Part shown: in pieces, positions 1 through 49,600 of the stretch
Layout of the letters: each line of letters starts with the position of its first letter
Position numbering within the stretch: the first letter of the stretch is position 1
NCBI RefSeq assembly: GCF_000315625.1
Contig: NW_005434666.1
Coordinates: 259,781-323,780, forward strand
Source of the DNA: Guillardia theta CCMP2712
Taxonomy: Eukaryota; Protista; Cryptophyta
DNA length: 64,000 bases
Direction: 5' to 3'
Notes under the pieces: model-generated
What the model was told of the DNA's origin: nothing
Database searches by the model: none
Seen by the model: the letters and a program-made list of their open reading frames with translations, nothing else
Position numbers and translations under genes: made by a program

Positions 1-627
1 CTCATGGTAGTTTTGCTTGTCCAAACGGGAGGAGGATTTCACTGTCGACTGTTCTCTGTTTGATATCCGACATTTCAAGTCACGCATGATGCATTGAGGG
101 AACAGAGGACCAGTGTTGTCTAAGATCTTGTGCTCAAAAGCATAAGGGTTGAGTCCACAAATAAACATGGTTTGTGAACTGAAAAATTGGCTTTATTGGT
201 ACAGGGAGTTTGGTGGGAAAGGGCACAGCAGGAGAAGGGGAAGGGACAAGTGGTGATCAGAAAGCTCGTACAGCAAAGGGGAAGCAGACGATTTCGGTGA
301 AGGAACAGGGAAGGAGAGCTGCGACGGGAAGCGTGGTCGCAGAGGAGGACAAGTAGAGGGTTCAGCCTGTAATAGAACTTTGAGGTGTAACCAGTGAGTA
401 GCCTCGGAGGTTCAGTATCTTGAAGGGGTGGTTGGCCGGACCAGAGTCAGTTTGTGGATGTTTATCACTTAGACTAGGCTCTGTGTATAAATCACGCAAC
501 TCAACGGAGCTCGTTTGAAGATCGCTTCTTCCAAGTTGGAGCTTGCTCGAGCCTCGCGGCCTTGAGCGAGACATTCCGTGGGGACAAGTTGTGTCAATCC
601 GATGATCGGGTGTCGGTGATCCCAACA
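1..627 (-). mobile_element. 5' end of probable Ty1/Copia LTR retrotransposon (LTR ~395-627, PBS-like TGG, start of gag running off the window)
   Basis: Minus strand reads TGTTGGGATCACCG...TACTCA (TG...CA, ~233 bp), then C-TGGTTAC. The window edge encodes ...SRLDKQNYHE, resembling the Copia gag N-terminal L-x-x-x-NY-x-x-W motif. Confidence 0.55.
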
Positions 628-1098
628 GCTGCTACCATGGTACTACCGCACGCATCGGAACCCAAGTTTCCATCATCTAGATATCTGTCACGACTATCCC
701 TAGAATCTTGTATCAAGAGTCAGGAAGGACTTTGTTATGTGGCAAGCATTGATCGCCGGACAAGGATTTGAAGTTGCCAGACCCCTCTTGAGGAGATCAA
801 ACACAACTCACGATGATGATCGAAAGTGGCATCCTCCCCTGCGCCATGGAACGGAGATACAACCTTTGCATGGACCGCATACAACGTCAAGGAAGTACCC
901 TTATCCTCAAACTCAACCTCCTCAGCCTCCGGGAATCAGCTTCCTGGGCATCCGACCGTGTCGGACGAGCCGCGAAGAACCGGTGAAATCAGTACCCTCC
1001 CGCACTCGGCAAGGTCCAATGGAGGCAGCCTTCTCGTCCCAAACACAAACAAGTCACACCGTGACACCACGATCACATACATATGATTTACGGGACTA

Positions 1099-1137
1099 GT
1101 GTCAATCGGGCCCGGGGTATCCGACGGTGATCCCAAC
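1099..1137 (-). repeat. Diverged second copy of the LTR 5' terminus
   Basis: gtgtcaatc...cggtgatcccaac matches 591-626. Confidence 0.55.
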
Positions 1138-1166
1138 GGCTCTGCTAGCCGCAGTGTGCTAGCCGC

Positions 1167-1219
1167 CTCTCCAGTGATTGCGACCTCGTACTAATTTTAA
1201 CTTAACTTTGAGTAAAGAG
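1167..1219. repeat. Dispersed repeat terminus, copy 1
   Basis: ctctcc..tgattg..cctcgYactRatYtttaacttaactttgagtaaagag. The 24-bp core is identical to 27516-27539. Confidence 0.8.
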
Positions 1220-1379
1220 CTCCAACCCGGCCCGGCGGGCCCGTCTACCGTAGTACCGCCTCCCGGCCGCGGGTGCCTTTTCGAAGGTCACTGAACTGTA
1301 GACTCATCAGAGCTGTCAAGGGGGTGAAAACCGGCTCATATAACAATTTAAAATAAAATGTATTTAAACTTATTCTTAC

Positions 1380-1880
1380 CACCAACCGTGACAAAAATGG
1401 TTTGAACACCCTACCCCTGGAACAATTCAACATCCCGATGTTCCTCACCCTACCCCCTACTTTCAGTCGCTGATGTGACCGCGGGTCACTGCCTTTATGC
1501 ATCAAGATCCTGAATCTACCACCCCCTCCTCCAACTTCGAAAAATATCCCCAGTTAAGGACCCCCACCTTCCATTTTGAAAGATTTCATGTCACCCCTAC
1601 CCCTAAAATAATGGAAAAGTACCCTACATTTTTCCCTTTCATTATTTCTGTCTGTACCCTCATCAAAGTCATAGTTTTTTTTCAACAACCCACCCCATCA
1701 ACGCCTGATTCGACATTGAAAACTACCCCACCAAGGTGGCGGTTCCGTTTTGAAAAAGAGTCCTTTGAATGTAGATTTCCTTTCTATGACAGATGTATGT
1801 TTTAAATAAGTTTTAAATAAAACAAGTATTTTGAAATTCAGAACAATCCTAGTTTGGTATCTTTCTGTCGGTATCCCCCA
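1380..1880. promoter_or_regulatory. TACCC/ACCCC-rich upstream region
   Basis: Dense TACCC/CACCCC words in an AT-richer tract upstream of a gene start. The pattern recurs at other 5' ends. Confidence 0.4.
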
Positions 1881-2460
1881 CAACAAGATCGCACATTTAA
1901 AAGAATATGATTTGAAAATAATACTTATCGCAAAAGTACTTTTTTTAAGTATCTGGAGGTTTCAGAGGATCCGTCGCCGTATGGCAGTGCGCGATACAGG
2001 AGGTGGAGGGCACGTGGCAAGAGGAGAGAAGAGAGGAGGAGAGAGGTGAAGAGAAGAAAAGTAGAGGAGAAATCTTGGGAAAGGCAGGAAAATGACGAAT
2101 GAGTGTTACAAGTGTAGACTGAGACCCAAGGGTGGTATTGAGAGACAGGAGAGATTTTGATCGAGGAGGATCCGGATTAGTCGAGGGTTAGTCGTCAAGA
2201 TGGCCAGCAGGTTTGTTATGGTTTCTATCCCTGCGTACGTGCTGTATGCAAGTAGGTACTGCACAAATTGCATGAGGAAACACTAACAAGAAAGGCAAGT
2301 ATGTCAAAACGATGATCTAACAAGATCGTTGATGATTACAGCTGCGACTTTTGAACGACGCAGATATCACGCTTGTACAGGAGTGAAACTAACCTTTCCT
2401 TGCAAACCTATTTCAACATTGTCCCACCATAAGATATTGAAACGGACTTTCAGGTCTCAA

Positions 2461-3700
2461 ATGGCGAAGAAGAAAAGTAAGGCGCAGCAGCAAACTGGAT
2501 CGCCAGCAATCTTCGATCGCAGACATTCGATCAGTGCAGCCGGTGAAGATGAGAGCCTTTCTGGTTCGATGCCATGACAGACCATGCAGGAGTACCCTCT
2601 CCTAAATCCCTCCCAGGCACCTTTGGGACAGGGGCGAGGGTGGGCGGGAAGAACGCGACGGACAGGCAGTCTGGCAAAGATTTGTCAAATCACAACAAGT
2701 AACGCTGAGTGGGAAGGAGGAGAGGGTTGACATGCTTGCTTCAGGTACTGCCACTTCTGTCAACATGTCAAGGTTCGATCAAGCAGCATGCTTGCCTGCG
2801 GGAACTACGAGTGTAGCCGCAGATACTGCGAGCAATGCCTGTTGATCCACCTCAACGAGAACGCAACCGAGCAGCCGAGCGAGGGTTGGTCGATCGTTGC
2901 TGGCAAGGTGAGTGAGAGCTTGTTTGTCAAAAGAGTTGAGATTGTTTGTGATGATGGTGGACCTTCTCGAGTGTTGTTGGTCTGCAGTACTGACTTGATG
3001 GCAGTTGCGTTGGTTCTGCCCGATCTGCCGGAACAAGTGCTGCTGCGCCAAGTCAGAATGCTTCTCCAATCATCGCCATTGCAAGGCTTTCCGCTACCGC
3101 CTCTGCCGCGCACAGAAGGCGCAGAAGCGCCTGTCCTCTCAGGGCGGCCCCTCGCGCAAAGCAAGGGCTGCCGACGGGAAACACAAGATGCCCTTTGCTG
3201 TGAGCGTGGAGAGGTTGGGGACGGCGTCGAGCACTGAGAGGGAGGAAGAAGTGCGAGAAGAATTGTGTGCAGCGAATCCGTTCTTTGGACAGGAGCACGA
3301 GGAACCGTTGGACGAGGCCCTGGACTTCACCAGCAGCCTGTGCGGGGATGGGATGGCGAGGCCGAGCGATACCCTGGATGAGGGAAGTGAACTTAGGTTG
3401 TGGCAGGCGGGAGAAATGAAGGAGGAGACTTGTCAATCAGACATCCTTAGCCTGGAGCATGTGCTGCCAGGGGCGCTGGAGGGAACCGAGGCTGACGAGG
3501 ACTTCGAGGAGGCAAGGTGGCTCAAGAGCACGTTGGAGGGGCTGGGAAGCTCGCCGTCCTGTTTCTTGGAGGATGAGGGACTGAAGGAGGAGGCGGTGGA
3601 GGAGCCGGGGATGAAGGAGCTGGGAAGTAGCTTCCTCGAGAGGTTCCAGAGCGAGCTGAAGCCTCGCAGAGGGTGTACGGTGATCTACGATTATGTGTGA
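2461..3700 (+). CDS. zf-4CXXC_R1 (CDCA7/JPO-type) zinc-finger protein, multi-exon; start uncertain (may begin ~2200)
   Basis: Spliced: YCHFCQHVK...LACGNYECSRRYCEQCL...|LRWFCPICRNKCCCAKSEC..HRHCK, then an acidic C-terminus. Confidence 0.75.
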
Positions 3701-12491: not shown

Positions 12492-14035
12492 TTACCTGAC
12501 TCCTTCCTGCTCCCGCCCTCTCCTTCCATCGTTCATTGTTGCTACCGCTGAGAGCAGGTCACTGTGAGGTCCAGCAACCTTCAGGCCCCCGGGCATCTTC
12601 TCCAGCAGGATCTTCTCTGCATGCTCTACAAACGGCTGGTACATTCGCTCCAACTCCCTCCCAAGCTCCTCCAGACGCTCCATCCCCTGCTTCGACTTCT
12701 GCATCCCCAAGATTGTCTCCCCCTGCCCCCTCGCAGCGTCAGCCTACAGCAGGCCGCCAGCTCGTCATGCTCACCGCGAACACGTCGGACTCGAAATCGT
12801 TCATCCACGTGTCGTAGTCCCTTCCACCACTGATGTGATGGTTGAAAGTCGAGAATGGATCATGCGGATTCTCCAGCAATGACTCGTAACTTTTCTTGTC
12901 AAGCTGCAGCAGCACAGTCAGCTCCTCCATATTCCTTCTCCATCCTCCCCCTTCATCCTCTTCTTCCTCCGCCTTCCCCACGCCACCACCACCTCCTCCT
13001 CGAGTCCTTCCTCTCAGTCTCCTCTCTTCTTCTTTCAGCTACTCTTACTTCCCGCCATGCTGCTGCTGCTGCTGCTCTTGAGACTGCCTTCCCCAAATTC
13101 ATTGTTCTCTCCTCCTCCCATCCTCCCCACTTTCTCTTCTCTCTACTCTCTTCCCTACCGGAAACATGAAAGTCTTCATCGACCTCAACCGCCCGTGACA
13201 GTCGAACTCCGGCTGCTGTACATATCTTGCCATCACGCCACCTTTCTCTCCCTTGCTCCCAAGATCTCGGATACAGCCAACTAGACTCAGCGGACGTCCA
13301 GGTCTCGTCGCAAAGAACCAGGTCCCGAACATCACGTAGCAGAAGGAGTTAAACTCTGTGGTAACCAGTGACAGCTCCCTGCTCGCTAACCTCGCTAGAG
13401 CCTCTTCCGCATGCAGCCCTAGTATCCTGCATGTCGCGTCCGATACGTACAGATGCGCCCGCTGCCCAGTAGAAGGTCGCAGGTAGTGATTGACCATCCC
13501 AAAGTTCTCATTCCCGTACAAGGCCCTCTCCAGCTCCAGGTCGTACTCCGATACTGTCTCGTTCTCCATCAGCAGCCGCGCTGGGACAGCCCGAGCTTGC
13601 TTCTCCGAGACGAAGATGTTCATGAGATCCTTTGAGTTGTAGCCAAACTCCCTGCTCGCGCAGCACGGACGGCTTGTCGAAGGAGAGGTTGCGAATACAG
13701 AAGTCGAGCGGCCTTTCAACCTGCAGCTCCAGCATCGAAGCGAGTTCATCGGAGTGTGTTAGAGGGGCCTGGACAAGTTCTGTCCCACTCCCACTGTCCC
13801 ATCCTTGCTCTTGCTCTTGCTCTTGCTCTTGATCCTGTTCTTTGAATCGTGCCTTCTGTCTGGCGATAATCTGAACTTCGTACACACAGTACTCTTGCTT
13901 TTGTTTCTGCTTACAACGCGAGCATGGGCGACCTTCGTCGCATTTGACCTTCGATTGCTTGCAAAGGACACACGAGTTTGATCCCCTCTTCCTACACTCC
14001 TTCTCTTCTCTTTCTCTGATACAGCTCCCTTCCAT
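12492..14035 (-). CDS. Zn2Cys6 (GAL4-like) transcription factor with PAS-like C-terminal region; frame break near 13660
   Basis: SCVLCKQSKVKCDEGRPCSRCKQKQKQEYC; HLYVSDATCRILG. GT-AG joins TFMFP|LDKKSYE and DVFA|GETILGMQK link the ORFs. Confidence 0.8.
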
Positions 14036-14630
14036 GCTCAGCCGAGTGCATCTGAGTAAAACCCTCAGAAATTTCAGGCTCACGCCCGCCCAAGACAGAG
14101 AGGCGAGATGATGCACGTGTAATGCGTCAGGCTCATCCTCTCCATCCCCTTCTATCCCTTTCTCCCTCAGACTCACCGCGCGCATGGCTGGAAGTTGTCG
14201 CACTTGAGCTCTGCATCCTTGCACGGCTGGCAGGCTAAGCGGGTTCTCTTCATCGACCTGGCAGTCAACATGGAGTTACTCGCTGCTGAAGCACGTTGAG
14301 GATGAGTATGTCAGAGATGGATGGAGCTGGCCGTGTATACTGCTTCTCCTGTTCTTCCCTCCTCTGCCCCCACCCCTGATTTTGCTCCTCACAATGCTGC
14401 TGATCCTGCTTGCTGCTGCTTCTGCTCCCTCCGCTCCTCGCTCCCTGCACCTCGCTCGCTCCGTCAGCTAGGTTTAGTTAGGACCTGTTGCTAAAATGAC
14501 CTTGCAAAAATCAAAAAAAATTCTCCGAATGAGTATCGTAACTTTTAGTCAAAACGGTTTCAAACCGTTTAAGATCAGTTATTAACGGCCTGAGGCGCAC
14601 TTGAAGCTGATGGAAATTTTCTTTTCCACC

Positions 14631-17060: not shown

Positions 17061-17776
17061 TCGGCTGTCTACACCAGAGCTGGAGCGTTTCCTCCAGTGG
17101 TAGCAGCAACTCCTCCGCTCCTCCTCCTCTTTACACAGCTCCTCCTCTCCTGCTTGCTCTTTCGGTCTCATCTCTTTCACCTTGCAATGCATCTTTCTAT
17201 GATCTCCCTTCTCCGCCATGTCCGCCAACCCGTTGTGAAACTCACTGTTGCCCCAGTTTCATGCATGCTCAATGTCACTGTTCCTGCGACACTGCCTGAG
17301 ACCTTGCTTTCATTTTCCTTGAGATCGCACGAGTATGCTCATGGTAGCTCTGATATTGTGCTCATCCCCTCTCGCACAGACGTGCACATCCTCATTTCGC
17401 TGCCCCACTGTGGCTGCTCTCCCCATTCTTGCAACCGCAACCAACGTTTCTCCTAACAAATCGGGCTCATTCCGCAACCCCCCTCCCTGCCAAAGCCGCC
17501 ATATCGATTCATAGCTTCATCAATTTGTTTTGATGTTTCTGTCTACATTCTCCCTCTCTATGCTGCGAATTTCATCTCGACTTTGAAGTTGCCTGGTTCA
17601 TTTTGTGAACGCTTGCGGTTCGTTGCCTGTTGTGACTTGGGCCTTCCCAAACTCGTCTGAATTTGTTTTGAACTCAGGCGATTGCTTTCAACTCAGGCAA
17701 TTATACTCTTTGAATACAAGCAAGCGGGCGTGAGCCCAGATCTTTCTGTCCTTCTGGAGCCTTGCGATCAGGAGCG

Positions 17777-20700
17777 ATGACCCTTTCAAACCAGGAGAAG
17801 GAGAAGAAGAAAGTCGAGAACAAATGCAGGCATGATCCGTCACAATGGCGCTCGTCGAACCAGCTGACTCCAACAATCTGCACGGTGATGCTGGGAAGGA
17901 GAACAGAAAACGAAGTAAGCCAGGCGATCGAACACTTCAGTCAAGTGGGCCAATGCCAATGTGGCAAGAGGGTGATTCTATGCAAGTACTGCCCCTTGTC
18001 GGGCGACAAGTTGGCCGAGAAGCTTCCAAAGAATTGTGGACAAAGAACTCCCAATCCTATCATTTTCGACAACAGAGCTACTAAGAATGCGGTTGACTCC
18101 CATTCAAATGGAGCTTATCACAGGTATTGGAAATCTCTACATGACAGGATGGTTTCTGGACGAGGGCTGGACATTGCTGAGGCCATTGATGACTTTCCTG
18201 ACTACTCGTTTGGGTCACCATCAGTGCTTGACTCAGAGACATCGTTTTCCACACCTAACAGTGAACTGTTCCTGAGTAAGTCGAATGGACAACAGATGTT
18301 CAGCCAATCGCCGATTGAAGGGATCATGAACGATGATCTTTCATCGAAATGTGATCAGGTCGGCTCGACGGGATCAAGCCTTTCTAATGTGAGCCAGTCC
18401 ATGGATGGGAGCGTGATTGAGAGCAAGAACCCTACCCCAAACTCAGAAGCGGGGATGAGTGAAGATGCATGGTTCGAGATGCAAGCAAGGTGTCTCAGAG
18501 AAAGAAACATGCAAACAGTTGCAGACAACTCTTGGAAACCGTTTCCGACTGAAGTTTTGAATGAGAGAGCAAGACCATCGTTCTCCAACACTGCAAATGG
18601 ACATTCTTCAGATCCCACTAAGATTTTGCCGGCGATTAACCTCGAAACTGATTACATGTCATTTGTCAAATTTCACGGACTTACAAATGGCTGGCCAGAT
18701 TTTGTGTTTCAAGAAGACTTCATCAAGCCATCCTTAAACGAAGTGGTGGCGTACGCCAAGAAACACAAACACCTTCCAGGCGTGATACCAGAGAAAAATG
18801 TCAACGAGGGTGATTTTTCTTGTCAAAGGGAGATCGCAAGCGTGCTTCAGTATGTAGAAATGCTGGTCCTGTGGGCGAAAGAGCTGAGTGACTGTAATAA
18901 GCTGTTGGAAGAGCAGGTTGGTGAATTTAAGAAAGCTCATTCGACTGGTGATGAAAGAGAACTGATGATGAAAATCTCAAAGTTACTCAGCAACATTGTG
19001 ACCAAGAGGTGCATTCAGCAACTTCAACTTTCTAGGCCGCAGGGAGCTGAACTTCTTCAGTGGATGAGAGAGAATGGTTTGATTTGCTTCGCTCGCGTGT
19101 TTGCTAAGAACGGCTTACATTCCTTGGAGCACGTTGCGAACCTAGACCAACAAGATTGTGAGAACTTAACAGTGTCGTTGGAGAACCTGGGTTCTGTTGG
19201 AAAGCGTATTGAATTGCAAATAGCCGTCCAGAATCTGCAAGGGGATATAAGAGCGAAAGACATGAACTACAGACTGCAGCGATTCTCCGACTGTCAAATA
19301 CCCTTTTGGTCGGCCTGGTCTAGCGCAGGTGCGGTCGAGGTCCTTTTAACGAAGAGCTACGTGCAACTGCTGAGCTTCGTTCTCGGCATGTCGCTGATTG
19401 TGAGCACCCTCTACTCCCTTGCTTCGGTGTGCATGCCTGACTCCTTGGGAATCGCCCGGTCGACAGCGCCTCCGACTCTAGTAAGGCTGACCAGGTGGCC
19501 GCTCAATCTGTTTGAAGGGTTGCTGTGGCTCAAGACTGTATATGACGCGAGGATGAAGTGCCCCATGGCAGCTTGTGGGGTTGCGACTTTCAACCTCAGG
19601 CTGATGACAATCAACTTATACATCCAAGTGCTGCTGGAAGTCAAGAACAGCCTCAGCGGCGACTCCTCGCAGTCATGCCCTGGGAGCATCTGGCAGGGAG
19701 TTCTGCTGCAGGATACTCTGGCCCTCCCAGTCATGACTCTGATATCCTACGGTTGTTCGAATCGTCAAAGACAGCTCTTGTCGTTCTTGTGGATCATTGG
19801 ATGTTACCTACTGTTGGTCGCCGTGCCCATCTACTGGAATCAGCACATGTTCAAGGCCCTGGTGGGTGCGGTCCTTGGGGCTGGTCTTGTGATCTTGTAT
19901 CTAGCTTGTAAATGTATCGGATGGGTTGTGCTGAAGAATCAGCTGTGGAAGGAAGAGCAGGACGCGAAAGAGTACAGACGGGAATGGGAGTCGCAACTAC
20001 AGCAGGAGGGAAACAATGAGTTGATAGCAAGACTCAAATCTGATGTGGACAGGATCGATAAAGTGATCAAGGAGCAGTTTCAACGCTGCTTTGCTGCCGC
20101 TTCCAAGACAGGGAATTGGCGCCTTCGAAGTTTGTTCGCAGAGCCGGTGGGAAGGTTTTCCTGCGTGGGCAAAGTCCGTCAATGCACCAACGACTTTGGC
20201 CACCTCTTCTCAGAGGCCTCGAGCATTAACGACCACTTCCACGAGTTCATGTCGGAGCTGCTGCAGAACAAGTTCTGTGGAGGCGTCAACTTCAACAAGG
20301 CAGCCATGGCGGGCGATGACCAGGTCAGGGAGAAGCTCTCCTTCTTGCAATCAGCTTCGATGCTGGGCGAGGTGAAGGTAGACCTTTGCGACAAGCTCAT
20401 CTTTGTCCGAGGGCCCATCAAACAGCCCGAGCGAGCGATCCAGAAGTGCGTGAGGGCGTATGGGAGAGACCCGGCCTGCTTGACCGACCTTGTACGTGCA
20501 AGTGTTGTCGTGGAGACCCTCGAGCAAGTTGGAGAAGTGATGCGCTTCCTTGAGAGGAGCTCCGTCGTGGGAGCAGACAGCTACGTGAAGGAGGCATGCC
20601 AGGGGGATGCTGATTCAGAGGGCGCTGAGGAAACAGTCTACTTCCGGATGACGCGCGTGAAGAACACTTTCGATGATACGAGGGAGGACACCAGCGCCGG

Positions 20701-21015
20701 CCTCACTCTCAAGACTCTCTCGATCAACCTGGAGGTCGGTTGGATCTTTGAGAATGACAAGTGCAAAATTCTGCCTGTGGATGATTGGGTTCTCAAGACA
20801 GCAGAAACTCACATCTGTGAGCTACAGGTATGGCAAGATGTAACGCGTTGCTCTCGATGTTGTAGTAGTTGTTTTTGTCAGTGTTGCCAACGCATCCCTT
20901 GTGCGGAGGGGTTCTTTTCTAACGCCATTGGCAGATCCATCTTCTTCCTCTCTTCCAGAAGCATCACGAGATGATGAAACATTTCGTTCAGAATCGTAAC
21001 GTCTTAGCTCGATGA
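17777..21015 (+). CDS. Multidomain membrane protein: Cys/His Zn-finger-like N-terminus, Bacteroidetes tail-fibre/peptidase-S74-like domain plus coiled coil, SAM domain, multi-TM region, RelA/SpoT-like nucleotidyltransferase
   Basis: GWPDFVFQEDF..PSLNEV....KHKHLPGV; LLQWMRENGL..FARVFAKNGL (SAM); hydrophobic helices; GPIKQPERAIQK..TDLVRASVV..RVKNTF..ICELQ|IH. Intron 20828-20934. Confidence 0.8.
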
Positions 21016-21122
21016 CGCGCCTGGATCCGCCTTTGTACATGCGTTTGTGCAGTAGTTAACCCTGATAAAGTGTTTGTTTCTCTCATATTACAGTGTCGTC
21101 AAGACAAGGTCAACACAGGAGG

Positions 21123-22455
21123 TTAGACATCCCCCCAGCACTGCCGCTCGCGGCTGATCTTCTGCTCCATCGCCATCCCTGTCACCTTCTGTCAGAGAGC
21201 AAGCGCGGCCGATGCGAGGAGGACGACGAGGAGGAAAACTCACTCAAAAATGCGCTGACGATGTGTGCCTCGGAGCAAGCGGCTTCCATGGCAGCCAAGT
21301 AACTCTTCTCCTGCACGAACCCTATCGAGGAAACGAGATGAGAAGCAGGAGGAGAACTGGGCCAGAGAAGAGTGGGGGGGGGGGAGCGGTGGAGCTTGGG
21401 GGGGGGGGGTCAACGAAATCAGGAGGCAGGCAGGCAGGAAGGCAGGCAGGACAGAACGAGACCTGACGGTATAGAGCTGACAATCTCCTCGTTCGGAATC
21501 CTCACGACGAACGTGCAAGTCCCTACAGCCTTGGTCTCTTGCTCCCTGCCAGGCCTCCATGGTGAGAGATCGGAGGCGAGCAGAGGGCAACCGTCACCTG
21601 CTGGGATCGGAGACGATTGTTCCATCTTCCATCACAGCACAGCAGACAGCAGCGGCTGCATCACTTCAGCCCCTAACTCAAGTGACAGGACAACAGCTTC
21701 ACCTGCAAACCGTAGAGGGACCCCAGCATCGATGAGAGCGGCGATCTGCCGACTTGCTCAACAACCTCACGTGGGGAAGGGAGCTCCATTTGCTCACCGC
21801 TGCGTTGATACTCGCCGCCATGCTGCTTCCGTCGTCGGAGAGAGGCTGCGGGCCAGTCACGCGAGGTCTCTTGGTCCTCTGCTCGAGTGAGACTACCTGG
21901 ATGGTGACATCGATCACGCACATCGGGTTGTATGAGCGCATGATAAGAGCCTGTCACATGTCAATTTCAACCAGCCAAGACTTTTCTCAACAAGCTGGGC
22001 TCTTCTTCACCTCTAGAGTTTGACGTACAACTTCCTCTGTATCTCTCCGCCATCCTCCTCCACCTTGCGCGCTCACATGTACCACCACCCGGCTCTCGTC
22101 GCTGTCCCTGCTCGACGCTTTTGCCTCTCGGGGCCCCACGATCCCTGCTATGCTGGTTGTTCTATGGAGGAATCATCAACGAAGAACATGAGGCAAGGGG
22201 AATGATGCGTGCAAGGAGATCTGAAAGAGCCTTTGGTTCGTTATGAGCTCTTGTGCACACGTTTCATATCAACAAGAGAAAAAGAAGAAAAGTTCATACA
22301 AGACATTCATGATTGTCATCAGTATCATCATCATCATCATCACTATCATCATCACCATCACAATCGTCATCATCATCGCCTTACCCTCCATGGCTCAATC
22401 GCGCAGCTCCATCGCATCCTCCCAACCCTCCTGCCTCGCACGCCATTCCTCGCAT
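21123..22455 (-). CDS. RRP46: Exosome complex RNase PH-like subunit Rrp46 (EXOSC5)
   Basis: MRGMACEAGGLGGCDGAARLSHG, VWGPRE, IDVTIQ|PLSDDGSSMAASINAA|IAALIDAGVPL, DP..EQE. Confidence 0.8.
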
Positions 22456-22459
22456 CCTC

Positions 22460-22620
22460 ACGTGCCCCCACCCCCCTCCAAGACTACCCCCTAATGCGGG
22501 TTGGGGTGCCATTTAGCATCATTACACCCTACCCGTACCATACAAATATTACCCCCATCTTTCATAACTTTTTGCCATTCATACTACCCCTGATCTATAA
22601 CCCCTACCCCATACTTCAAT
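22460..22620. promoter_or_regulatory. Divergent promoter, TACCC-rich
   Basis: Between the RRP46 and Asn-synthase-like starts; many TACCC words. Confidence 0.45.
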
Positions 22621-24949: not shown

Positions 24950-26688
24950 TCATGCGCTCGAAGACGTCTGTGTGTCCCTCCAATAGGCCATGGCCGGCAC
25001 GTATCGGGTCAACAGCGGCCGTTTCTCGTCCTCCTCCCTCAGCAGACGAACGTCGCTGGTGTAGAGGAGGAGAGGCATCCCCAGAGTCTCTCTTGTGTGC
25101 AGGACCGAAGCGAGCATGGCGCTCAGGGCGACCAGAGAAAAGATGTAGTAGACCGCGTTGACTCCTGCGTGAATGGCGGAGGTTGCTATGAGGGGAGACA
25201 GCATGGCAGCGATACGCCCGAAGCTGTTGCTGAAGGCGATGCTGGAAGCCCTCAGAGTGGAGGGGAAAAGCTCACCGGAGTAGATGTAGATGACGGTGAA
25301 GGGACCCGCGACCATGGCACGTGCGACGGCGTTGAGAGCCATGAAGTAGTGGATCTGAGTGGTCTCCACGCTTGCGAAGAGGCAGCAGACAGAGACGAGG
25401 AAGAAGCCAGTGATCATCGCTCCTCGCCTCCCAATGTACGATGAGTCCATGTAGAAGATGTTGGCGAAGATGACCAGGCACTCCACCCCGCTGTTGATCA
25501 TGACGGCCTCGTAGGCTTCCTTGAGCTCCAGGTTAAAGAGTTGCTCGAGCATGACGGGATAGATGAAGATGTGACCATAGTAGATGAAGCCGCAGGAGGT
25601 GAAGGCAATGGTGAGATACAGGGTAGAGCCCAACAAGTCGCTGCCAAACATCTCCAGGAACCTCCAAGTGTTATCGTTGTCCTCGCTGATCGCGGGGTCG
25701 TGTGAGTGGCAGACCTCTCCACCCGCCTGCATCTCTGTCCCATTGACCTCGTTGAGAGTCGTCAACAGCGCCTTGATCTCCTCCTTGCGATCGTGGACGA
25801 AGAGGTAATGGGGTGACTCTGGGATGAACAAGAACATGAGCGGGAGGGAGATGAGACCCGGGACGATGCAGATGAAGAGCATATACCTCCACCATAGCTG
25901 GTCACCGGGCATGCTCTCATGGACTACGATTCCAACGACGCAAGCAAAGAAGGTCCCGAACGCAAACGCAACCCCGATCAGAGTCATGGCGAACCGAGCC
26001 CTCCACCGCGTCGGCGACCACTCGAGCAGCAGCGCGTCTGCCACGGGGATCATGGAGCCCACTCCCACCCCCGTGAAGAATCTCGCGACAGAGAAGGAGA
26101 TGATATCGGTGGCAACAGCGGAGAGGGAGCCGAAGATGCAGAAGAGGACGGCCATCCCCAACAGTGTGTTCCTCCTTCCGAAAATATCTGCGAGGATCCC
26201 TCCGCAGAGGTTCCCCGTGAGCAAACCGGCAAAGATGGCTGACAAGATATGTCAGGAGCCTCCCATTGATAGCACATGACAAAGACTCACTGCTTCCGAT
26301 GGCGGCAAAGGTCATCTCGCCCAGCCCCCACTCCTCAGAAAGCGGCTTCCTCAGCATGGAAATCACTGTCATCTCCATTCCATCCGCCATGACCAGGAGA
26401 GCGAGGATGAAGAACAATCGGAACTGATACCACCCCACCCCTGCATGATCTATATGCTCGTCCACGGTCGGAGCATCCTTTATGCCCGTCATCTGCATCA
26501 AATGCACGTTCAGTCCCCGAACCAAACGTCTGGCCCTCCTCCCTCTCAAAGCTTTCTTGGTTCCTCGACTGTCTATCTGGATTTTCACTTCTGATCCTTA
26601 CTCTTGTGCCGCATACTTCAGGTCTTTCTACAACCACTCTCCTTTCTCCCACTCTCGACGGATCAGTCCCAAACAACAATACTTCCAT
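24950..26688 (-). CDS. MFS transporter, SV2/SVOP-like
   Basis: GVGWYQFRLF..LALLVMADGMEM, GILADIFGRR, ARFFTGVGVG, PESP, IGRR, YSGELFPSTLRAS, ETLG. Confidence 0.9.
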
Positions 26689-27539: not shown

Positions 27540-28186
27540 GGTACTAGCGGTGCCCCAGTGGTGACCGGGCCCTCAGCGGACCGTCGGACCGTCAGAATTG
27601 AGGCCCTTACTAAGTCCCCTAGCGGCGGCGGCGGCGAAGCCCGCCTGGCGCGGCCGTGGCCTGCCGCCGCCCGGCCGCCCGGGCCGCCGATCAGGCCCGG
27701 GTGACCGTCACTGGCCGGGCAGTACCGTGGCTGGACGGTCCGAACACCCGGTCGGCTTGCCGGGCAGTCCACAAACAACTTTGACTCAGTCAAAGTCTGA
27801 ACTTTGAAACAAGGGTAGGTAGCACTACCCACCCCTGACGTCCCGGAGTCACCAGCCATGAACCCTCCTTCCTTCTCACTCCCCCCATACCTATGTATGC
27901 CTGTAGAAAGATCGCATCTCACTGGTCTCAAACCTGCCCTCCCTCCTTCCCACCCTCTATCAGCTCCCTACCCCGGGTCTTTCCCTACCCCTCTACCCGT
28001 ACTAGTTCCCTCACCCTACCCCGCAGCACCTCCCAGTTCTTACCAAAATCCCCGATCCCCCACGAATCTGCTTCCCGCGCGAGGCTCAGCTACCTTGCAG
28101 CGTCGTCCCTGCAGACCTCCTGTAGGCACTCGTACTTGCGTTTCATCGGAATCGTAGACAAGGCTTCGAGGCGCTGTGGAGTAGAC

Positions 28187-30798
<2,612 letters not shown>

Positions 30799-43640: not shown

Positions 43641-46600
43641 TCAGACAGTCGGGCGCTGCGGGTAGTTGGGGTTGGGCTGCTTGGAGGGCAGTCCCCCTAC
43701 AAGAGAATAAGAGGCGGGAGGGAGGGAGGGGAGGGTCAAGAGAGAGGAGGAATGGAGGGGAAACTCACTTGGATCAGAGAAGTTGATAACCTCCCAGTTG
43801 TAAGGGTTGTCCCAGTAGTCCGGAGGGATGTACTGCAAAATAACATCACAACAGACGTCTCCTGCCCTCTTCACATCCTTTCCTCTTCATCCCTCCCTCC
43901 CTGCCCCCTCCTTCCTCTTTCCTCTTCTTCCCCCTCCCTCCCTCCCTCCCTCCCTCCCTCCCTCCCTCCCAGTCGTCTCTGTGCTTAGTCTCCTCCTCCC
44001 TCACCTGCTGGTCCAGTGGCTCCCACGTGCTCGACTGAAATTTGATTGAGGCGCAGAGGAGGACGAGCAAGAGTTTCACCTTAGGTTGAGGAGGACAAGC
44101 ATCGTACGCTGACAGACTTGGGAAAATGCAGATGATGTCTCCTGCACGAATATAGTGAGGAGGTGCTGAGCAAGATGAACAGCGATGAGAAGGAGGAAGA
44201 GGAAGTTGGAGAGGGAGCAGGGGTTCAAGATATGAGGTAGCTCGACAGGGAAGAGCAGGGAAGAGATGAAAGGTGGAAGGTGAGAGGAGCAAGGGGACGA
44301 GAGAGTGTATGGGAGAAGAGAGCGGAGCAGGAGGAAGGGATACCAGGAGAGATAGAGGTGGCGGCAAGTTGAGGGTTTGCGCTGATCACTTGCGACATGT
44401 TCATACTGAACTTATGGCTGAGAGACTCGACCGTATCCTCGCCGCTTGCTGTGTAGAGAATTCCGATCTGCTCAAGGTTAGACAAGCAAGAAGGCTCCTC
44501 CCTTCACTCCTCCTCCCCCCCCCTCCCTCCGCCGCTTCCTCCCCTGCCACCACCACAAACACCACCACAAACACCACCGCAAACACCACAATTACCACGT
44601 CCTCTTCCTCCTACTCTTCTCGCTCCTCCTCCGCCTCCCTCTTGTCCTCACCTTCAGTGCTTGTCCAGTAGGAACGACGTCAAAGTTTCGCAACGTCGGG
44701 TTGATGCTCCAGAGTAGCTGCAGGTCGTCTCAGTCTTTATCGCCACCTCCGTCCCTTCCCCTCCTCCGCCTTCCACTGCCTCCTTCTCCTCCAGTTCTCC
44801 TTCCTCCTTCCCTCCCCTCCTTCTCCTTCCTTTTTCGTCTTACCTGCCACTCTATTGACAATGCAGTCGCGATGCTGTTCAGCGAGTCGTCCGTCACAGT
44901 GCAAGTGAAGCAAAGCTGCACGAGGAATCGGAAACATCTTTCAAGAAACATGTCAGCCAGAAGCCAGTTGGCAATGGTACCCTCCCTCCTCCTCCTCCTC
45001 CTCCTCCTCCTCCTCCTCCTCCTCCTCCTCCTCGTCATCGTGGTCATCACCACTGCCACTACCATAGTCCTCGTCCTCGTGGTCTGCATCGTCCCACCAT
45101 GGGACGGGAGCGTGCAAGGGAGAGCGAGGAGTCTCACCTCTGGGAGCTGATAGTTGCGCCATGCACCTCCATCATTGCGAAGCATTGAACCAGCTCGAAG
45201 CCGCGGTGGGAGCGCGTGGGTGTCCACGTGAAGGTAGAGGAGACGACGGAGATCTGGGAGGAGGTGGAGCAGCCCCTGGAAGGAGGACACTGGTCCCCTT
45301 CGCACAGCTTCCTCGCCCCGTAGCTCATGGGCTGGATGTTTCCTCCTGGCACTAGCTTGCCTTGCGGAGGGAGGGAGGAGAGGACAGTGACATCCATCCA
45401 GTTGCTGGAGCTCGTCTCGGGAATGAGCCAGAAGGCAGAGGGGACGAAGACGATGGTGAAGTTGCTGCCCTCCGACGCGACGAGCGGGACGTCGACATGG
45501 CACAGCTCAGCGGTCTTGAAGAGGGAGGCGTCAGGAGGAGAGGGACTGATGAACTGCGGGCTGGGAGCTGGGAAGGAGCACACGACGAGCTGGGAGGGGA
45601 GGGAGTCGGAGTACTCGATGTGAAGGAGCCCGCCGTCTGTGATGACCAGCTGACCCAAAGTCCCACTCCTGAGGTCGGAGATCGGGAGGAGGGAAGAGAA
45701 TCTGCCTGGCTGCTCCGACTTCGTCAGCTGCAGCAGCTGCTGGAAGTTTGCACTTGTCAAAGTGACGCTGACGGCCTCTCCCTCGGCGTCTCTGTCGAGC
45801 AGCAGCACCAGCAGGCAGGTTGCGTTGGTCTGCGGGTTGGTGGTGATGGAGATTGAAAGCAGTCCCAAGTTGTGTGCGGTGGAGTTGGAGGAGAGCAGTC
45901 GTGGTGGGTTGTCTTCCTTGTAGGATATGACGACAGTTGACAGCAGCGGCATGCCGATAGCTGAGAGCTGGTTCTGTTGCTCGAGCACGACGGTGCCATT
46001 CTCCGCCGTTGTCAAAGTCGTCGTGAAGATGCCGCTAGAGGTGTCGGTCTCCCTGAGTGACAGGACCAGCTCGACGCCTCCGACTCTTGCGCTAGTCAAG
46101 TTGGGCCAGACGTCAACCTGCATGTCGTTCACGTCAAGATCAGCGTCGATGACTGTAATAGAGATCGAGCCGTTGAGGGCGAACATGGCCGGAACCTCAA
46201 GGCGAGCAGGATAGAAGATGAACTTGGATATCGAGACAGACTGCGAGGCATCCATGGAGATGTACGAGATGTTGAAAAGCTCTCCCCTCCTGTACTGGAT
46301 CAATCCATCGTTGCTCAACACCACAGACGAAGGGTCGAGCTGCGTGTAGGACGAGAACTGTCCTGGAACAGTCAAGGCCGGAAACATCTTGACATCTTCG
46401 ATCTGTTTGCCATTGGAAGACGTGATTGTGACGTAGAAATCTTCGTTGGCCTGCAGCGGCGAATTAACAAAGAAGTTCTGCGCAACAACTTCCAGGACAG
46501 GCAGGTTGTCTTGCTCGATCAAGTTGGCCCTGAGGAAAAAGACGCTGGCAACTTTCACAGTGGCCTGTACGGTCTTGAATGGGCTGTTGTCGTAGTAACT

Positions 46601-49600
46601 GATGATGATGTTTTGCCCTGGTTCAACCTCTAGGATATTGTCTCCACTGACAGAGACATCTCCTGTATGGAGTTTCGTCTGCAACCTCCCCTCATACACG
46701 CCAAAGTTGCTGATCTTCACCATCATACCATTCGCAAACCCCGCGTTGTTGGTCTCAACTACCAACTCCTTGGTGTCGAAGTTGTACGAGGTGATCCTGA
46801 ACGACTGGGTGTTGACCTGCATCAGCCCGTTGATGTACGACCCGCTCCCTCCCGTCAAGTTAGCAGGTGAAAGAATGACAGTGTTCACTCTCAGGATCTG
46901 CAGGACTGTAGCATACACCACTTGCTGGTACAAAGTCACCTAGAGCCAAAGTCGTCAGCGCAAGGGCAGCGATGAGTTTTCAAAATTTCACCTCCTCCGT
47001 CTCAGCATCACTGGAAGGATACTTGGTGACCTCCAACACCAGAGCGTTCATGGTCAGCCTCGTCTCAGGGTTGTACATGAAGATCTCCAGGGATGCGTTG
47101 GGGAAGATCGATCGCTCTGACGTAGAGATCTGAGCGAGTGCTGAAACCTCCAACGTCTGTGAAGCGTCAGGGGCAAAAGGGATGCATGAAGTGACTAGCC
47201 TGCGTCGGCTGCGTTGAAGTGGCGAAGGGCATGTTCTTGTCTACATACTGGAGATTCAGCTTTCCTCCGTAGGCGACAAGGACTGAGTTGAGCTGAGATC
47301 TGCAGCTGACGCATGTTTGAAGGATCCCAGTGAAATGATTGCTGTCTGCGCTGTTCTCCGTGAGTTTCAGCGTCTTGACCTCAACATCGATCGAGGTGAT
47401 CAAGACGTCTACTGTCTCCACCACGTTCGGATTCGTGTTTGCGTCATCATCGACGACTGGAGCAAGCAGAGACAATTCAGCATCTGGTGATGTATCACAT
47501 GCTTGCACTCACCCAAGAAGGAGATGTTGTTTCCGGGGAAGATTTCAGATGTCGGCCTGATCGACATGATTCCAGCTTTTGCAACCTGTCATCACCAGAC
47601 ATCAGTTGTCATCGACCGGCAGCAGAACAACCTTTATGCTCCCCGTTCGATCCCCGACAGGCATCGCGTCGGAGTAGGTGACCTTAAATTGATGACGTCA
47701 TCATAGCAGCACACAAGAAGTCTTCTAGTCTCACCGTAAGTTGGTCTCCCGGCCTCACCGTCATGATCCCGTTGTCCGTAACTCCCTGTACGTTGGGGTC
47801 ACACTTTCCACAGGACGACAGACTGCAGATCCCATCCCCCATGCCTGCAGAGCCAAGTCAGGGAGAGAGGTCGAGTGCGAGCACTGTGGGAGAGCAGAGA
47901 GACTCGTTACGGTAACTGAGAGGAGGAAGGGCTAAGGGAGAGACTGACATGTGTCGAGAACTCCTGTGTACACGGCGCTATTGGGGCTCGTCGGGTACAA
48001 GTTCACGTGTTCAAGCTCCCCGTCTTTGTTTGTTGAGACAACAACAGTGAAGTTCTCGACATGCAAGAAGGCATTGTCCGGGTCTACGACGCTGATGAAT
48101 AGCTTGTCCTGGGCCTTCAACACATTCCCAACATCTCCGTTGCTCCTGATCGACGACATGGCAGCCTGCCCGGTCACTCCGATCGTCACGTTGACATGCA
48201 CATCGTTTGAGGCATCTTGGAGGACTTGCAACCTGCAACGAGGCAGCAGCGTCAGGAGGAGAAGCAAGCATCTTCATTGCCGCAGCATGTCACCGGCTCA
48301 TGTCAGTGTATGTCATAGTGAGCATGTCTCCTTCACGGACATGGACGACTTGTAGGTTCGCGAGCGGCTCCTGGCACTCAGGGTCCCCGCAGAGCTCGGG
48401 AGAGTGAGTGCCGCTGAGGATGATGCGGATGAAGCCGGTGAAGGTGCTCGAGGACGGACCAGTCTCCGTCAGCACAACAGACTCTTGACCTTCACCGACC
48501 CAGCTTGACGTCACCATGACAGCTGCGTTCTCCACCAGCAGTGGGTTCGTGTTGAGATCCTCGTCCGTTAGCTGAGGGCGAGCGAGTAAGAAGGGAGGCA
48601 TGCGGAGGACAGACAACTTACTGTGATGTTGATCCTCCGGTCAAGTCCTCCGACCCTGGGAAAGGCGGCAAGAACTCCACGGGCACTGACAACGCTGATC
48701 TGTTGAGGTGTTAGGGTGCTTGAAATGTTTGAGCTGGATCCTTACGATTTCGTGAGATAGTACAGGGAGACTATCAAGATAGGTTGCCGATACGATATCT
48801 CCCACTTTCAAGTTCCATACGGAATACGTTGCGTTGCCAGTGAAAGTGATTCCAGTCTGGTTGAGATCATTCTTGAGATAGAAACAAGCACGATGATATC
48901 TGTCTGTTGCCGAGGCGTTGAACATCACCAAATCAACTTGGTGCGCTTGTTGGACATTAAGGGTTGACCAAGACAAAGAGACCTGTCGTCATTCTCTTTC
49001 ACAACAAACAAACAAACAAGCAAACATGTAGAAGTGTACCTGTACAGTCTGTTGATTGTTTACAATGAGATCATTGTCGTAGACGTTGAGGCAAAACCAA
49101 CCATCCTGCATGATAATTCTTGGCTGAAACGAGATCGACCCAATGCTCCCCCCAGCTCCTACAGTCTTCTGGCTCACGTGCAACAACGATTCTCCTCTGA
49201 AGTTCGAGAGCTCACGGTAGGAGAACGACAATGTTTCCCCCTCGTTCACAAACATCACCCCGTCATTGTTCGCGCTGTATCCGGTGTTCTGTCTTGTTGC
49301 GATCACTCCAGTGAAAACCCCCTGCCCATTGGAGCCTGTCAGGTTGGTAGAGACTTGGACCATTTCTCTCAGGACAATCTCCTCCGCCCCTTCAAGTGTT
49401 CTGCTGCTCTGCACAACGACGCTGACTGTGTCTGCATGCTCAAAGTCCGTGTCTGCGTCAGAGTCTACCACTGTGACTGTGACTGTTGCCCCGGCTCCGA
49501 CATGCTCGGGGAGCACGTGCGGGCAGTCTGAGGACTGCGGGCAGGCATCGGATGCGAATCTAGTTTCGTTCCTAGGAAGAGAGGAGGAGGAGAGACGGAC

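Follow-up and report, generated by a model that had tools for sequence, protein, structure and literature searches.

We analysed a 64,000-nt stretch of nuclear DNA from Guillardia theta CCMP2712 (contig NW_005434666.1, positions 259,781 to 323,780; hereafter the window), focusing on one forward-strand gene whose product joins a Cys/His-rich N-terminal domain, a domain with WPDFVF and HLPG motifs (the WPDF domain), a SAM domain, a membrane region and a C-terminal domain predicted to adopt the RelA/SpoT-homologue (RSH) synthetase fold. The longest open reading frame (ORF) at the locus spans 17762-20974 (+) and 1070 codons, its first ATG lying at 17777 in the ORF list. With about three stops per 64 codons, such a frame would arise with a probability of (61/64)^1070, or approximately 1e-22, and it is therefore not a chance product. 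Its translation was 100% identical to GUITHDRAFT_101652 of G. theta, whose product is labelled 'SAM domain-containing' in UniRef. No further copy of the gene's domain was found inside the window.

Comparison with a public JGI transcript contig, L067 (3983 nt), defined the exon structure. The contig was 100% identical to window positions 17682-20827 and 20932-21178, and the protein called on it, P0193 (1043 aa), which clusters with the NCBI protein, matched both coding exons at every residue. The final 48 codons of the window ORF are intron read-through and not protein: after CELQ the homologues read -V-HLLPLF..., whereas the window ORF reads ...CELQVWQDV..., and the peptide matching the end of the homologues, IHLLPLFQKHHEMMKHFVQNRNVLAR followed by a stop, sits downstream in another frame. 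The 107 nt of the intron are also missing from the transcript-length contigs L002 and L003 of relatives, and the start Met at 17777 is common to the homologues. The L067 mapping and the identity of P0193 thus establish that the gene is transcribed, spliced as deduced and translated conceptually into a single 1043-aa chain. An earlier reading of the DNA, made from the sequence alone, had proposed one chain ending at 21015; no separate genes were seen, and that coordinate is the exact end of the stop codon. The RSH-like domain closes with a helix (H..F-V..RN.L) that is encoded by exon 2 and conserved family-wide. The NCBI model P0001 (XP_005839461.1, 1026 aa) ends in ...ETHI-LLPTHPLCGGVLF through a different 3' splice and drops both the terminal helix and the invariant E.Q motif; the end in P0193 is the correct one.

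The sequence-only reading had also described the gene as almost intronless, which agrees with the transcript: one intron interrupts 3.2 kb, and the adjacent RNase PH gene is divided into at least eight small blocks within 1.2 kb. Past the studied gene, L067 continues in eight blocks of 44-153 nt separated by gaps of ~45-220 nt (window 21243-22462, minus strand). The gene called at 21243-22462 carries Pfam RNase_PH, is convergent and intron-rich, and its 3' end abuts or overlaps the 3' untranslated region (UTR) of the studied gene. The G+C content at third codon positions (GC3) of the studied gene was 0.60, at the low end compared with 0.61-0.82 in neighbouring ORFs. By domain (17777-20827), GC3 was 0.47 in the linker, 0.50 in the WPDF domain, 0.54 in the SAM domain, and 0.69 in both the membrane and RSH regions. 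As a compositional trace of recent transfer these values are suggestive at most; the unevenness could stem from parts of different age or origin, or from amino-acid composition alone. The features of the gene are summarized in Table 1.

Table 1. Features of the studied gene and its product (window positions; residues of the 1043-aa protein)
Feature	Position	Strand	Residues	Evidence
5' UTR (minimum transcribed)	17682..17776	+		L067 bases 1-3146 = window 17682-20827, 100% identity
Coding exon 1, ending ...ICELQ	17777..20827	+	1-1017 (1017 codons)	ORF list; 1017/1017 identity to P0193
Cys/His-rich N-terminal domain, candidate metal-binding	17819..18091	+	15-105	Invariant residues in four homologues
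Ser/Asp/Asn-rich linker	18107..18613	+	111-279	36-57% identity to relatives vs 87-94% in flanking domains
WPDFVF...KHKHLPG domain with helical (coiled-coil-like) tail	18686..18976	+	304-400	Homology to P0192 and Bacteroidota loci
SAM domain, five helices	19037..19240	+	421-488	Foldseek; family profile
Membrane region, six predicted helices	19355..19945	+		Hydropathy; AlphaFold2 helices with pLDDT 60-90
Juxtamembrane helical hairpin	19949..20158	+	725-794	AlphaFold2 helices 2-18 and 22-52, pLDDT >90
RSH (Tas1-like) synthetase-fold domain, exon-1 part (predicted)	20159..20827	+	795-1017	Profile; AlphaFold2; Foldseek
Intron, 107 nt, GT..AG	20828..20934	+		Sequence; missing from transcript contig L067
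Coding exon 2, codons to 21012, stop (TGA) 21013-21015	20935..21015	+	26 codons	26/26 identity to P0193 C-terminus
3' UTR (minimum)	21016..21178	+		Colinear continuation of L067

Profile searches connected the C-terminal domain to Tas1. A profile of four close homologues, compared with PDB sequences, gave Tas1 (6ox6) as its top match (E = 0.016), and a 66-sequence family profile (A4) reached the Tas1 chain 6ox6_A at E = 5.3e-8 (35.9 bits). Tas1 was the only solved protein found by the A4 profile, Rel, RelA, SpoT and RelP/Q being undetected by sequence. In the A4-Tas1 alignment, GPVK.P.RAIQK...TDLVR pairs with APIKSRERAMQK...KDLAR of Tas1, with K, R, K, D and R in motifs one and two opposite identical residues; only the first half of the domain aligns. 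The motifs of the window protein are IKQPERAIQK (residues 881-890), DLVR (904-907), RVKN (960-963) and ELQ (1015-1017). Eight residues were invariant in 66/66 relatives (K882, R886, K890, R893, D904, R907, E1015 and Q1017), the first six of which are identical in the aligned Tas1. The codons of K882, D904, E1015 and Q1017 occupy window positions 20420-20422, 20486-20488, 20819-20821 and 20825-20827, respectively. The conserved blocks of the family follow the order basic cluster, D..R, KNRF...GYRD.S.N.EVGW, HICE.Q and H..YV..RN. RSH synthetases have their motifs in the order basic cluster, D..R, KN.F...GYR, E.Q and H..Y, and the family order matches this. The E.Q motif presumably serves the ATP/Mg site, given its place in the model and the RSH motifs.

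Structure prediction led to the same fold. The AlphaFold2 model based on the A4 alignment, which represents the domain of the Hanusia phi orthologue (P0002; 71% identical to the window protein), had a mean predicted local distance difference test score (pLDDT) of 88.6 and a predicted template modelling score (pTM) of 0.88, and its low-confidence loops correspond to extra insertions between strands. Foldseek comparison with the PDB revealed that the best 50 matches were all RSH synthetase domains (prob ~1.0), namely RelP/SAS2, RelQ/SAS1, Tas1, Rel, RelA, SpoT, FaRel2 and an exported small alarmone synthetase (SAS). Among viral models (BFVD), the top matches were phage proteins labelled 'RelA/SpoT' and 'Tas1'. 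The hairpin preceding the domain is conserved in many relatives, profile positions 1-70 being matched in many family members. From these profile and model data, the C-terminal domain is predicted to be an RSH synthetase fold whose sequence resembles that of Tas1, a (p)ppApp synthetase, more closely than that of any (p)ppGpp synthetase. The sequence-only reading had assigned a RelA/SpoT synthetase fold here, and the assignment is upheld by the Tas1 match, the Foldseek results and the invariant catalytic-type residues, with the motifs where it had placed them. Two of the Pfam models it had associated with the protein, PF04607 (RelA_SpoT) and PF13884 (Peptidase_S74), fared otherwise and gave no match at E ≤ 10. 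Whole-chain Pfam and NCBIfam scans returned nothing significant, and PHROG scans of the separate domains were blank.

Upstream of the enzyme region, the SAM domain was identified at the level of fold and family. Foldseek showed that this part of the protein resembles the SAM domains of Eph, tankyrase, BICC1 and p73 (more than 15 structures, prob 0.87-1.0), with local superpositions giving target TM-scores (TMt) of 0.6-0.83 and root-mean-square deviations of 2-3 Å over ~65 residues. The underlying AlphaFold2 model of residues 1-724 (13 sequences) had a mean pLDDT of 52, rising to 73-85 over residues 420-500, and only its SAM domain and membrane helices could be used. A family profile of the region matched almost exclusively SAM chains in the PDB (best E 1.7e-4). 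Pfam SAM_1/SAM_2 scored below threshold in the window protein itself (E ~0.02-0.04; 15.6-15.9 bits vs a 23-bit cut-off, and 14.7 vs 20.5), and at family level (E ≤ 0.1) SAM_2 was found in 13/29 and SAM_1 in 12/29 relatives, with a best value of 3.3e-5. The five-helix fold, the PDB profile and the family-level Pfam matches together corroborate the SAM domain that had been recognised by eye.

The membrane region contains six predicted helices (residues 527-552, 575-594, 596-626, 643-661, 664-689 and 691-723), in line with the five to six expected from the sequence; by hydropathy they comprise three strong and three weaker hydrophobic segments. Foldseek matches of this part to XPR1, MATE and rhodopsin (prob <0.2) were disregarded. 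The even helix count, the charged N-terminus without a signal peptide, the basic flanks and the enzyme's need for ATP make an N-in/C-in topology, with both ends cytosolic, the parsimonious arrangement.

The WPDF domain (WPDFVF at residues 306-311, HLPG at 332-335) has a different distribution. Among the relatives, the block GWPDFVFQEDF...YAKKHKHLPGVIPEK... with its helical tail is confined to the cryptophyte clade. P0192 (265 aa) emerged from a length-adjusted word search, and BLASTP against it gave 41% identity over 87 aa (E 5e-19 pairwise, 1.1e-8 database-wide), and a scan of bacterial genomes with the WPDF alignment yielded 60 loci, nearly all titled Bacteroidota, in genera including Chitinophaga, Pedobacter, Flavobacterium, Mucilaginibacter and Dysgonomonas. 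The window peptide alone matched all 60 loci directly (best E 3e-14, 33-45% identity). Several copies per bacterial locus were common (130 tblastn segments in the 60 loci, L004-L063), with neighbouring WPDF genes at, for example, L014 1740-1982 and 3034-3264, and L009 3637-3858 and 4930-5181. A word-index search of the region against proteins of 586-1864 aa returned only the close homologues, and the WPDF piece had no tblastn match in 50,697 phage records.

The WPDF proteins examined were three bacterial ORFs (223-308 aa) and P0192; bacterial examples are L005 2380-3306 and L008 2623-3294. Two of the ORFs were translated in full. Both fully translated proteins have signal-peptide-like N-termini and a 'G.VGIGT...L.VNG' neck, and end in the WPDF domain and a coiled-coil-like tail. 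Weak PHROG tail-fibre matches fell on the neck of P0192 and of two bacterial proteins; the remaining bacterial protein had no PHROG match, and none of the four belongs to a Pfam or NCBIfam family. By sequence, the WPDF domain is homologous to the C-terminal domain of these small, secreted, tail-fibre-like Bacteroidota proteins, and was acquired from, or is shared with, them. The algal segment (residues ~304-390) shares with them the arrangement GWPDFVF...NKHLPGIPSA...coiled coil, but the bacterial proteins are 220-310 aa long, with signal peptides, the tail-fibre neck and a terminal WPDF domain, whereas the algal domain lies inside a chain of unrelated modules, presumably in the cytosol. The earlier description of this region as tail-fibre/S74-like therefore holds in its first half; Peptidase_S74 (PF13884) did not match the whole chain or the isolated domain at E ≤ 10. 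The domain likewise had no Pfam, PHROG or PDB sequence match, the best PDB hit being alpha-actinin at chance level (E 0.2), and AlphaFold2 gave a pLDDT below 50. A hit of DUF6706 to the WPDF piece (E 0.0048) was dropped, as it was absent in the paralogue.

The N-terminal domain, found only in the cryptophyte clade, bears nine invariant Cys/His residues within residues 17-87 (C17, H19, C35, H53, C60, C62, C69, C72 and C87, including C60-x-C62...C69-xx-C72) in four homologues, and lies where the earlier reading had put a Cys/His N-terminus. The zinc finger proposed there is a guess from this Cys/His pattern. No Pfam or PDB match better than chance was obtained for residues 1-115; REV, TAF1C and CO dehydrogenase matched at chance level (E 0.02-1), and the AlphaFold2 pLDDT was 54-70. 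The following linker is probably disordered, with modelled pLDDT below 50. Among the paralogues and the Hanusia orthologue, identity was 87-91% in the WPDF domain, 86-94% in the SAM domain and 53-71% in the RSH region, which nevertheless keeps all catalytic-type residues. Constraint is thus strongest in the WPDF and SAM domains, which may form an assembly or partner-binding module.

To place the gene in a family, we compared the four-homologue profile with 1.84 billion representative proteins, of which 269 passed E ≤ 1e-3 as relatives, 107 of them also E ≤ 1e-10; relatives are clusters at 50% identity, at least 269 in number, 150 of the 269 being listed. The conserved core (profile positions ~150-318) is usually C-terminal in proteins of 90-1443 aa. 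The SAM-like and membrane regions of the window protein align with many long relatives, and of the 52 relatives that extend 60 residues or more beyond the enzyme region on its N-terminal side, 49 have hydrophobic segments there. These alignments and segments define a conserved unit, SAM–membrane–stalk–RSH, reduced to membrane–RSH in short members. The N-terminal heads differ: TIR_2 occurs in two relatives (P0051, TIR_2–SAM–F5/8C...RSH; P0068, TIR_2–SAM...RSH), F5/8 type C (discoidin) in four, and a protein kinase and HEPN_DZIP3 in one each.

Named sources of family members were G. theta, Hanusia phi and MMETSP transcriptomes, and one 30-kb metagenomic contig is judged eukaryotic by the UCH and PQ-loop neighbours of its family member; the family is apparently protist. 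No relatives turned up when viral contigs were scanned with the alignment of close homologues. In G. theta, at least four genes share the full architecture (GUITHDRAFT_101652, 116750/116751 and 122765), of which 116750 and 116751 are a neighbouring pair with consecutive accessions on one scaffold, and at least one further gene, 113953, has only the core in common with 101652. The product of 122765 (P0004) lacks ~80 linker and ~46 membrane-region residues relative to the near-identical product of 116750 (P0003/P0196); these deletions probably stem from a faulty gene model or a faulty assembly of its 9.6-kb scaffold and not from biology. No curated model matches the family (Pfam 2025, NCBIfam 2026, PHROGs), and no description of it was found in a full-text literature search, most subscription journals lying outside its coverage. 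The catalytic fold and the SAM domain are already known; what appears to be new is a divergent eukaryotic RSH subfamily with a fixed SAM–membrane–RSH core, here fused with a Bacteroidota domain.

Among known systems, the nearest is Tas1 (Apk1), a type VI secretion (p)ppApp synthetase toxin of Pseudomonas aeruginosa. Besides the A4 profile match and a place among the top fold matches, the two proteins share a basic cluster and D..R motif that align residue for residue, and both enzymes are C-terminal domains of larger proteins. Tas1/Apk toxins combine a delivery domain (PAAR or MuF) with a cognate immunity protein or hydrolase, Tas1 itself having an N-terminal PAAR domain and the immunity protein Tis1 (PMC10083569). 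The algal protein differs in its membrane anchoring and SAM domain; a Pfam scan found no PAAR or MuF domain in it, no immunity partner was visible, and its immediate neighbour encodes RNase PH. RelP/RelQ (SAS1/SAS2), Rel, RelA and SpoT share the fold (6fgx, 6ex0, 5ded, 2be3, 6yxa and 5iqr; Foldseek prob ~1.0) and the order of conserved motifs, but the algal domain shows no sequence-level or PF04607 match to them, has extra inter-strand insertions, and belongs to a eukaryotic, membrane-bound protein without hydrolase, TGS or ACT domains.

Two eukaryotic systems are comparable in logic or setting. SARM1 is an ARM–SAM–SAM–TIR NADase in which a SAM scaffold is combined with a nucleotide-consuming enzyme, and is not a polytopic membrane protein. 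The likeness is one of logic only: a SAM domain is joined to a nucleotide-consuming enzyme, and the relatives P0051 and P0068 combine TIR, SAM and RSH-like domains. The catalytic domain and chemistry of the algal protein are different, and neither ring formation nor a death function is implied. Fungal NOD-like receptors (NLRs) also place a eukaryotic RSH-type domain in an oligomerising receptor of the immune or cell-death type (PMC4986451). Theirs, however, matches PF04607 and lies N-terminally in a soluble NACHT/NB-ARC protein (PMC4986451), whereas the algal domain is C-terminal, follows the SAM domain and membrane helices, and is too divergent for PF04607.

We lean, with slightly more belief than doubt, towards a reading of the gene product as an oligomeric membrane-bound RSH enzyme that signals through an alarmone-type product, drains ATP, or both. 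Its oligomeric state at the membrane would be maintained by the SAM domain together with the coiled-coil/WPDF module, and a cue sensed in the variable N-terminus or in the membrane region would activate the RSH domain. This domain would then transfer the beta,gamma-pyrophosphate of ATP onto the 3'-OH of a purine nucleotide; with Tas1 as the nearest relative, the likeliest acceptor would be an adenine nucleotide. The outcome would be an alarmone-type signal and/or an ATP drain, and the protein could act as a stress, immune or cell-fate effector whose logic (sensor, SAM scaffold, nucleotide-consuming enzyme) would be like that of SARM1. Bacteria use RSH toxins in phage defence (CapRel). Such toxins, the TIR and HEPN partners in relatives, and the RelA_SpoT domains that fungal NLRs carry as N-terminal effectors (PMC4986451) make a stress or immune role plausible. 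Tas1 makes pApp, ppApp and pppApp and depletes ATP (PMC10083569).

Several points weigh against this reading. At thresholds as loose as E ≤ 10, Pfam RelA_SpoT (PF04607) had no match in the window protein or in three close homologues, and it matched 1/67 relatives (E 8.6e-4). The Foldseek E-values were modest (~1e-3) and the TM-scores by target low (0.34-0.52), and the structure modelled was the domain of the Hanusia phi orthologue, not that of the window protein. The loop Tyr of RSH enzymes stacks on the acceptor base. In the window protein and the Hanusia orthologue, the loop that motif order equates with the RSH G-loop reads T977-L978-K979 (L978 codon at 20708-20710), whereas the family has G-[Y/F]-R (Tyr/Phe in 63/66, Arg in 63/66) and Tyr-Arg is retained in the paralogues for which P0003 and P0004 stand; with L978/K979, the substrate or activity of this copy may differ. 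TIR and HEPN heads occur in few relatives and not in the window protein. Finally, we infer the enzyme activity, substrate, biological role, topology, oligomerisation and immune role from the data above.

A wider proposal, which we regard as possible but doubtful, is that cryptophytes and other protists have a family of SAM-scaffolded, membrane-anchored enzymes, derived from a Tas1-like bacterial toxin domain, that when activated produce (p)ppApp-type nucleotides and/or ATP collapse in the cytosol. It would form a hitherto unrecognised eukaryotic alarmone or abortive-infection-type immune system assembled from bacterial conflict parts (an RSH toxin and a Bacteroidota tail-fibre terminal domain) behind swappable heads (TIR, kinase, discoidin, HEPN and Cys/His).

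Of the explanations that compete with a membrane-bound alarmone synthetase or ATP drain, the one that survives best, still unlikely in our estimate, is that the RSH-like domain pyrophosphorylates the 3' CCA end of tRNA and stops translation, as do the toxic small alarmone synthetases (toxSAS) CapRel, FaRel2 and PhRel2. RSH toxins are reported to pyrophosphorylate tRNA in a preprint (10.1101/2021.04.30.441581), the FaRel2 structures 8pu4 and 8pu3 were among the Foldseek matches, and the aromatic loop residue for stacking a free nucleotide base is lost here (L978). However, FaRel2 ranked 39th or lower by fold, Tas1 alone was found by sequence among solved RSH proteins with no toxSAS chain at E ≤ 10, and retention of the aromatic residue in 63/66 relatives makes its loss peculiar to this sub-clade.

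An ordinary stringent-response (p)ppGpp synthetase, for instance one serving the plastid in the manner of plant and algal RSH1-4, appears improbable. It would belong to the same fold superfamily by Foldseek, and nuclear-encoded RSH enzymes are known in algae and plants (PMC3153485, PMC10107265). Against this, the protein has no HD, TGS or ACT domains and no PF04607 match, its N-terminus is a charged Cys/His domain with no signal or transit peptide, its sole sequence-level relative among solved structures is Tas1, and its SAM and membrane architecture is unlike any RSH class of Atkinson et al. (PMC3153485).

The sequence-only reading had drawn an analogy to MYRF. A MYRF-like membrane-tethered regulator, in which the tail-fibre-derived domain would trimerise, cleave itself and free the Cys/His part to the nucleus, with the RSH tail secondary or inactive, is marginally less probable still. 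The Cys/His domain and WPDF/coiled coil do precede the membrane helices, conservation is highest in the WPDF and SAM domains, and in bacteria WPDF sits C-terminally after the 'GNVGIGT..P..KL.V.G' neck of tail-fibre-like proteins. Phage tail spikes carry the S74 chaperone at that C-terminal place. Yet the analogy is not supported: neither Peptidase_S74 nor an Ndt80-type DNA-binding domain was found, with no PF13884 or Ndt80 match at E ≤ 10, no PDB sequence match and, for the DNA-binding domain, nothing in residues 1-115 in Pfam or the PDB. The AlphaFold2 model of the WPDF region was of low confidence (pLDDT <50), the bacterial WPDF domain is simply terminal, no Ser-Lys cleavage motif was recognised, and the strict conservation of the RSH residues argues against a decayed tail.

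Least credible is an annotation or assembly artefact fusing separate genes, or a pseudoenzyme scaffold, for which the wrong 3' end of P0001 without E.Q and the off-family L978/K979 could be cited, but against which stand the 100% identical transcript contig encoding the full 1043-aa chain, the same full-length architecture in the Hanusia phi orthologue and G. theta paralogues, both on transcript-length contigs and in named cluster members, and the eight intact invariant catalytic-type residues.

Elsewhere in the window, the region 45134-61839 (-) contains very long, repetitive ORFs (45134-46939, 50273-52156, 54741-56279, 56276-60451 and 60427-61839) with units of ~100 aa and motifs of the 'I(T/S)V.DAD(L/M)N...' and 'L.ETS..SG.FTG' types. 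It looks like one giant repeat/adhesin-like gene with a few large exons, and long exons are accordingly not unique to the studied gene. An ORF at 27893-30798 (+) has a long (HE)n/(EQ)n microsatellite repeat ahead of RING-like and IBR-like stretches rich in Cys/His; by eye it is a candidate RBR-type (RING-between-RING) E3 ligase gene. Also by eye, 13508-14224 (-) shows a Zn2Cys6-like Cys cluster (C..C......C......C..C pattern), and the 431-aa ORF at 24950-26245 (-) resembles a major-facilitator transporter.

Eukaryotes outside plastids are currently thought to lack alarmone synthetases, with scattered SAS and the RelA_SpoT domains of fungal NLRs (PMC4986451) as exceptions. An RSH survey listed as eukaryotic members plant RSHs, Mesh1 and scattered small alarmone synthetases and hydrolases, the non-plastid exceptions being scattered SAS in Dictyostelium and Ascomycota (PMC3153485). 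GUITHDRAFT_101652 adds to this picture an expressed, well conserved eukaryotic gene with all catalytic-type residues in place, and its analysis points out a Bacteroidota domain that has no Pfam or NCBIfam model. If the enzyme is active, 3'-pyrophosphorylated nucleotides or deliberate ATP depletion would enter eukaryotic cytosolic signalling or immunity, and the family would offer a tractable system for the domestication of bacterial toxin domains.

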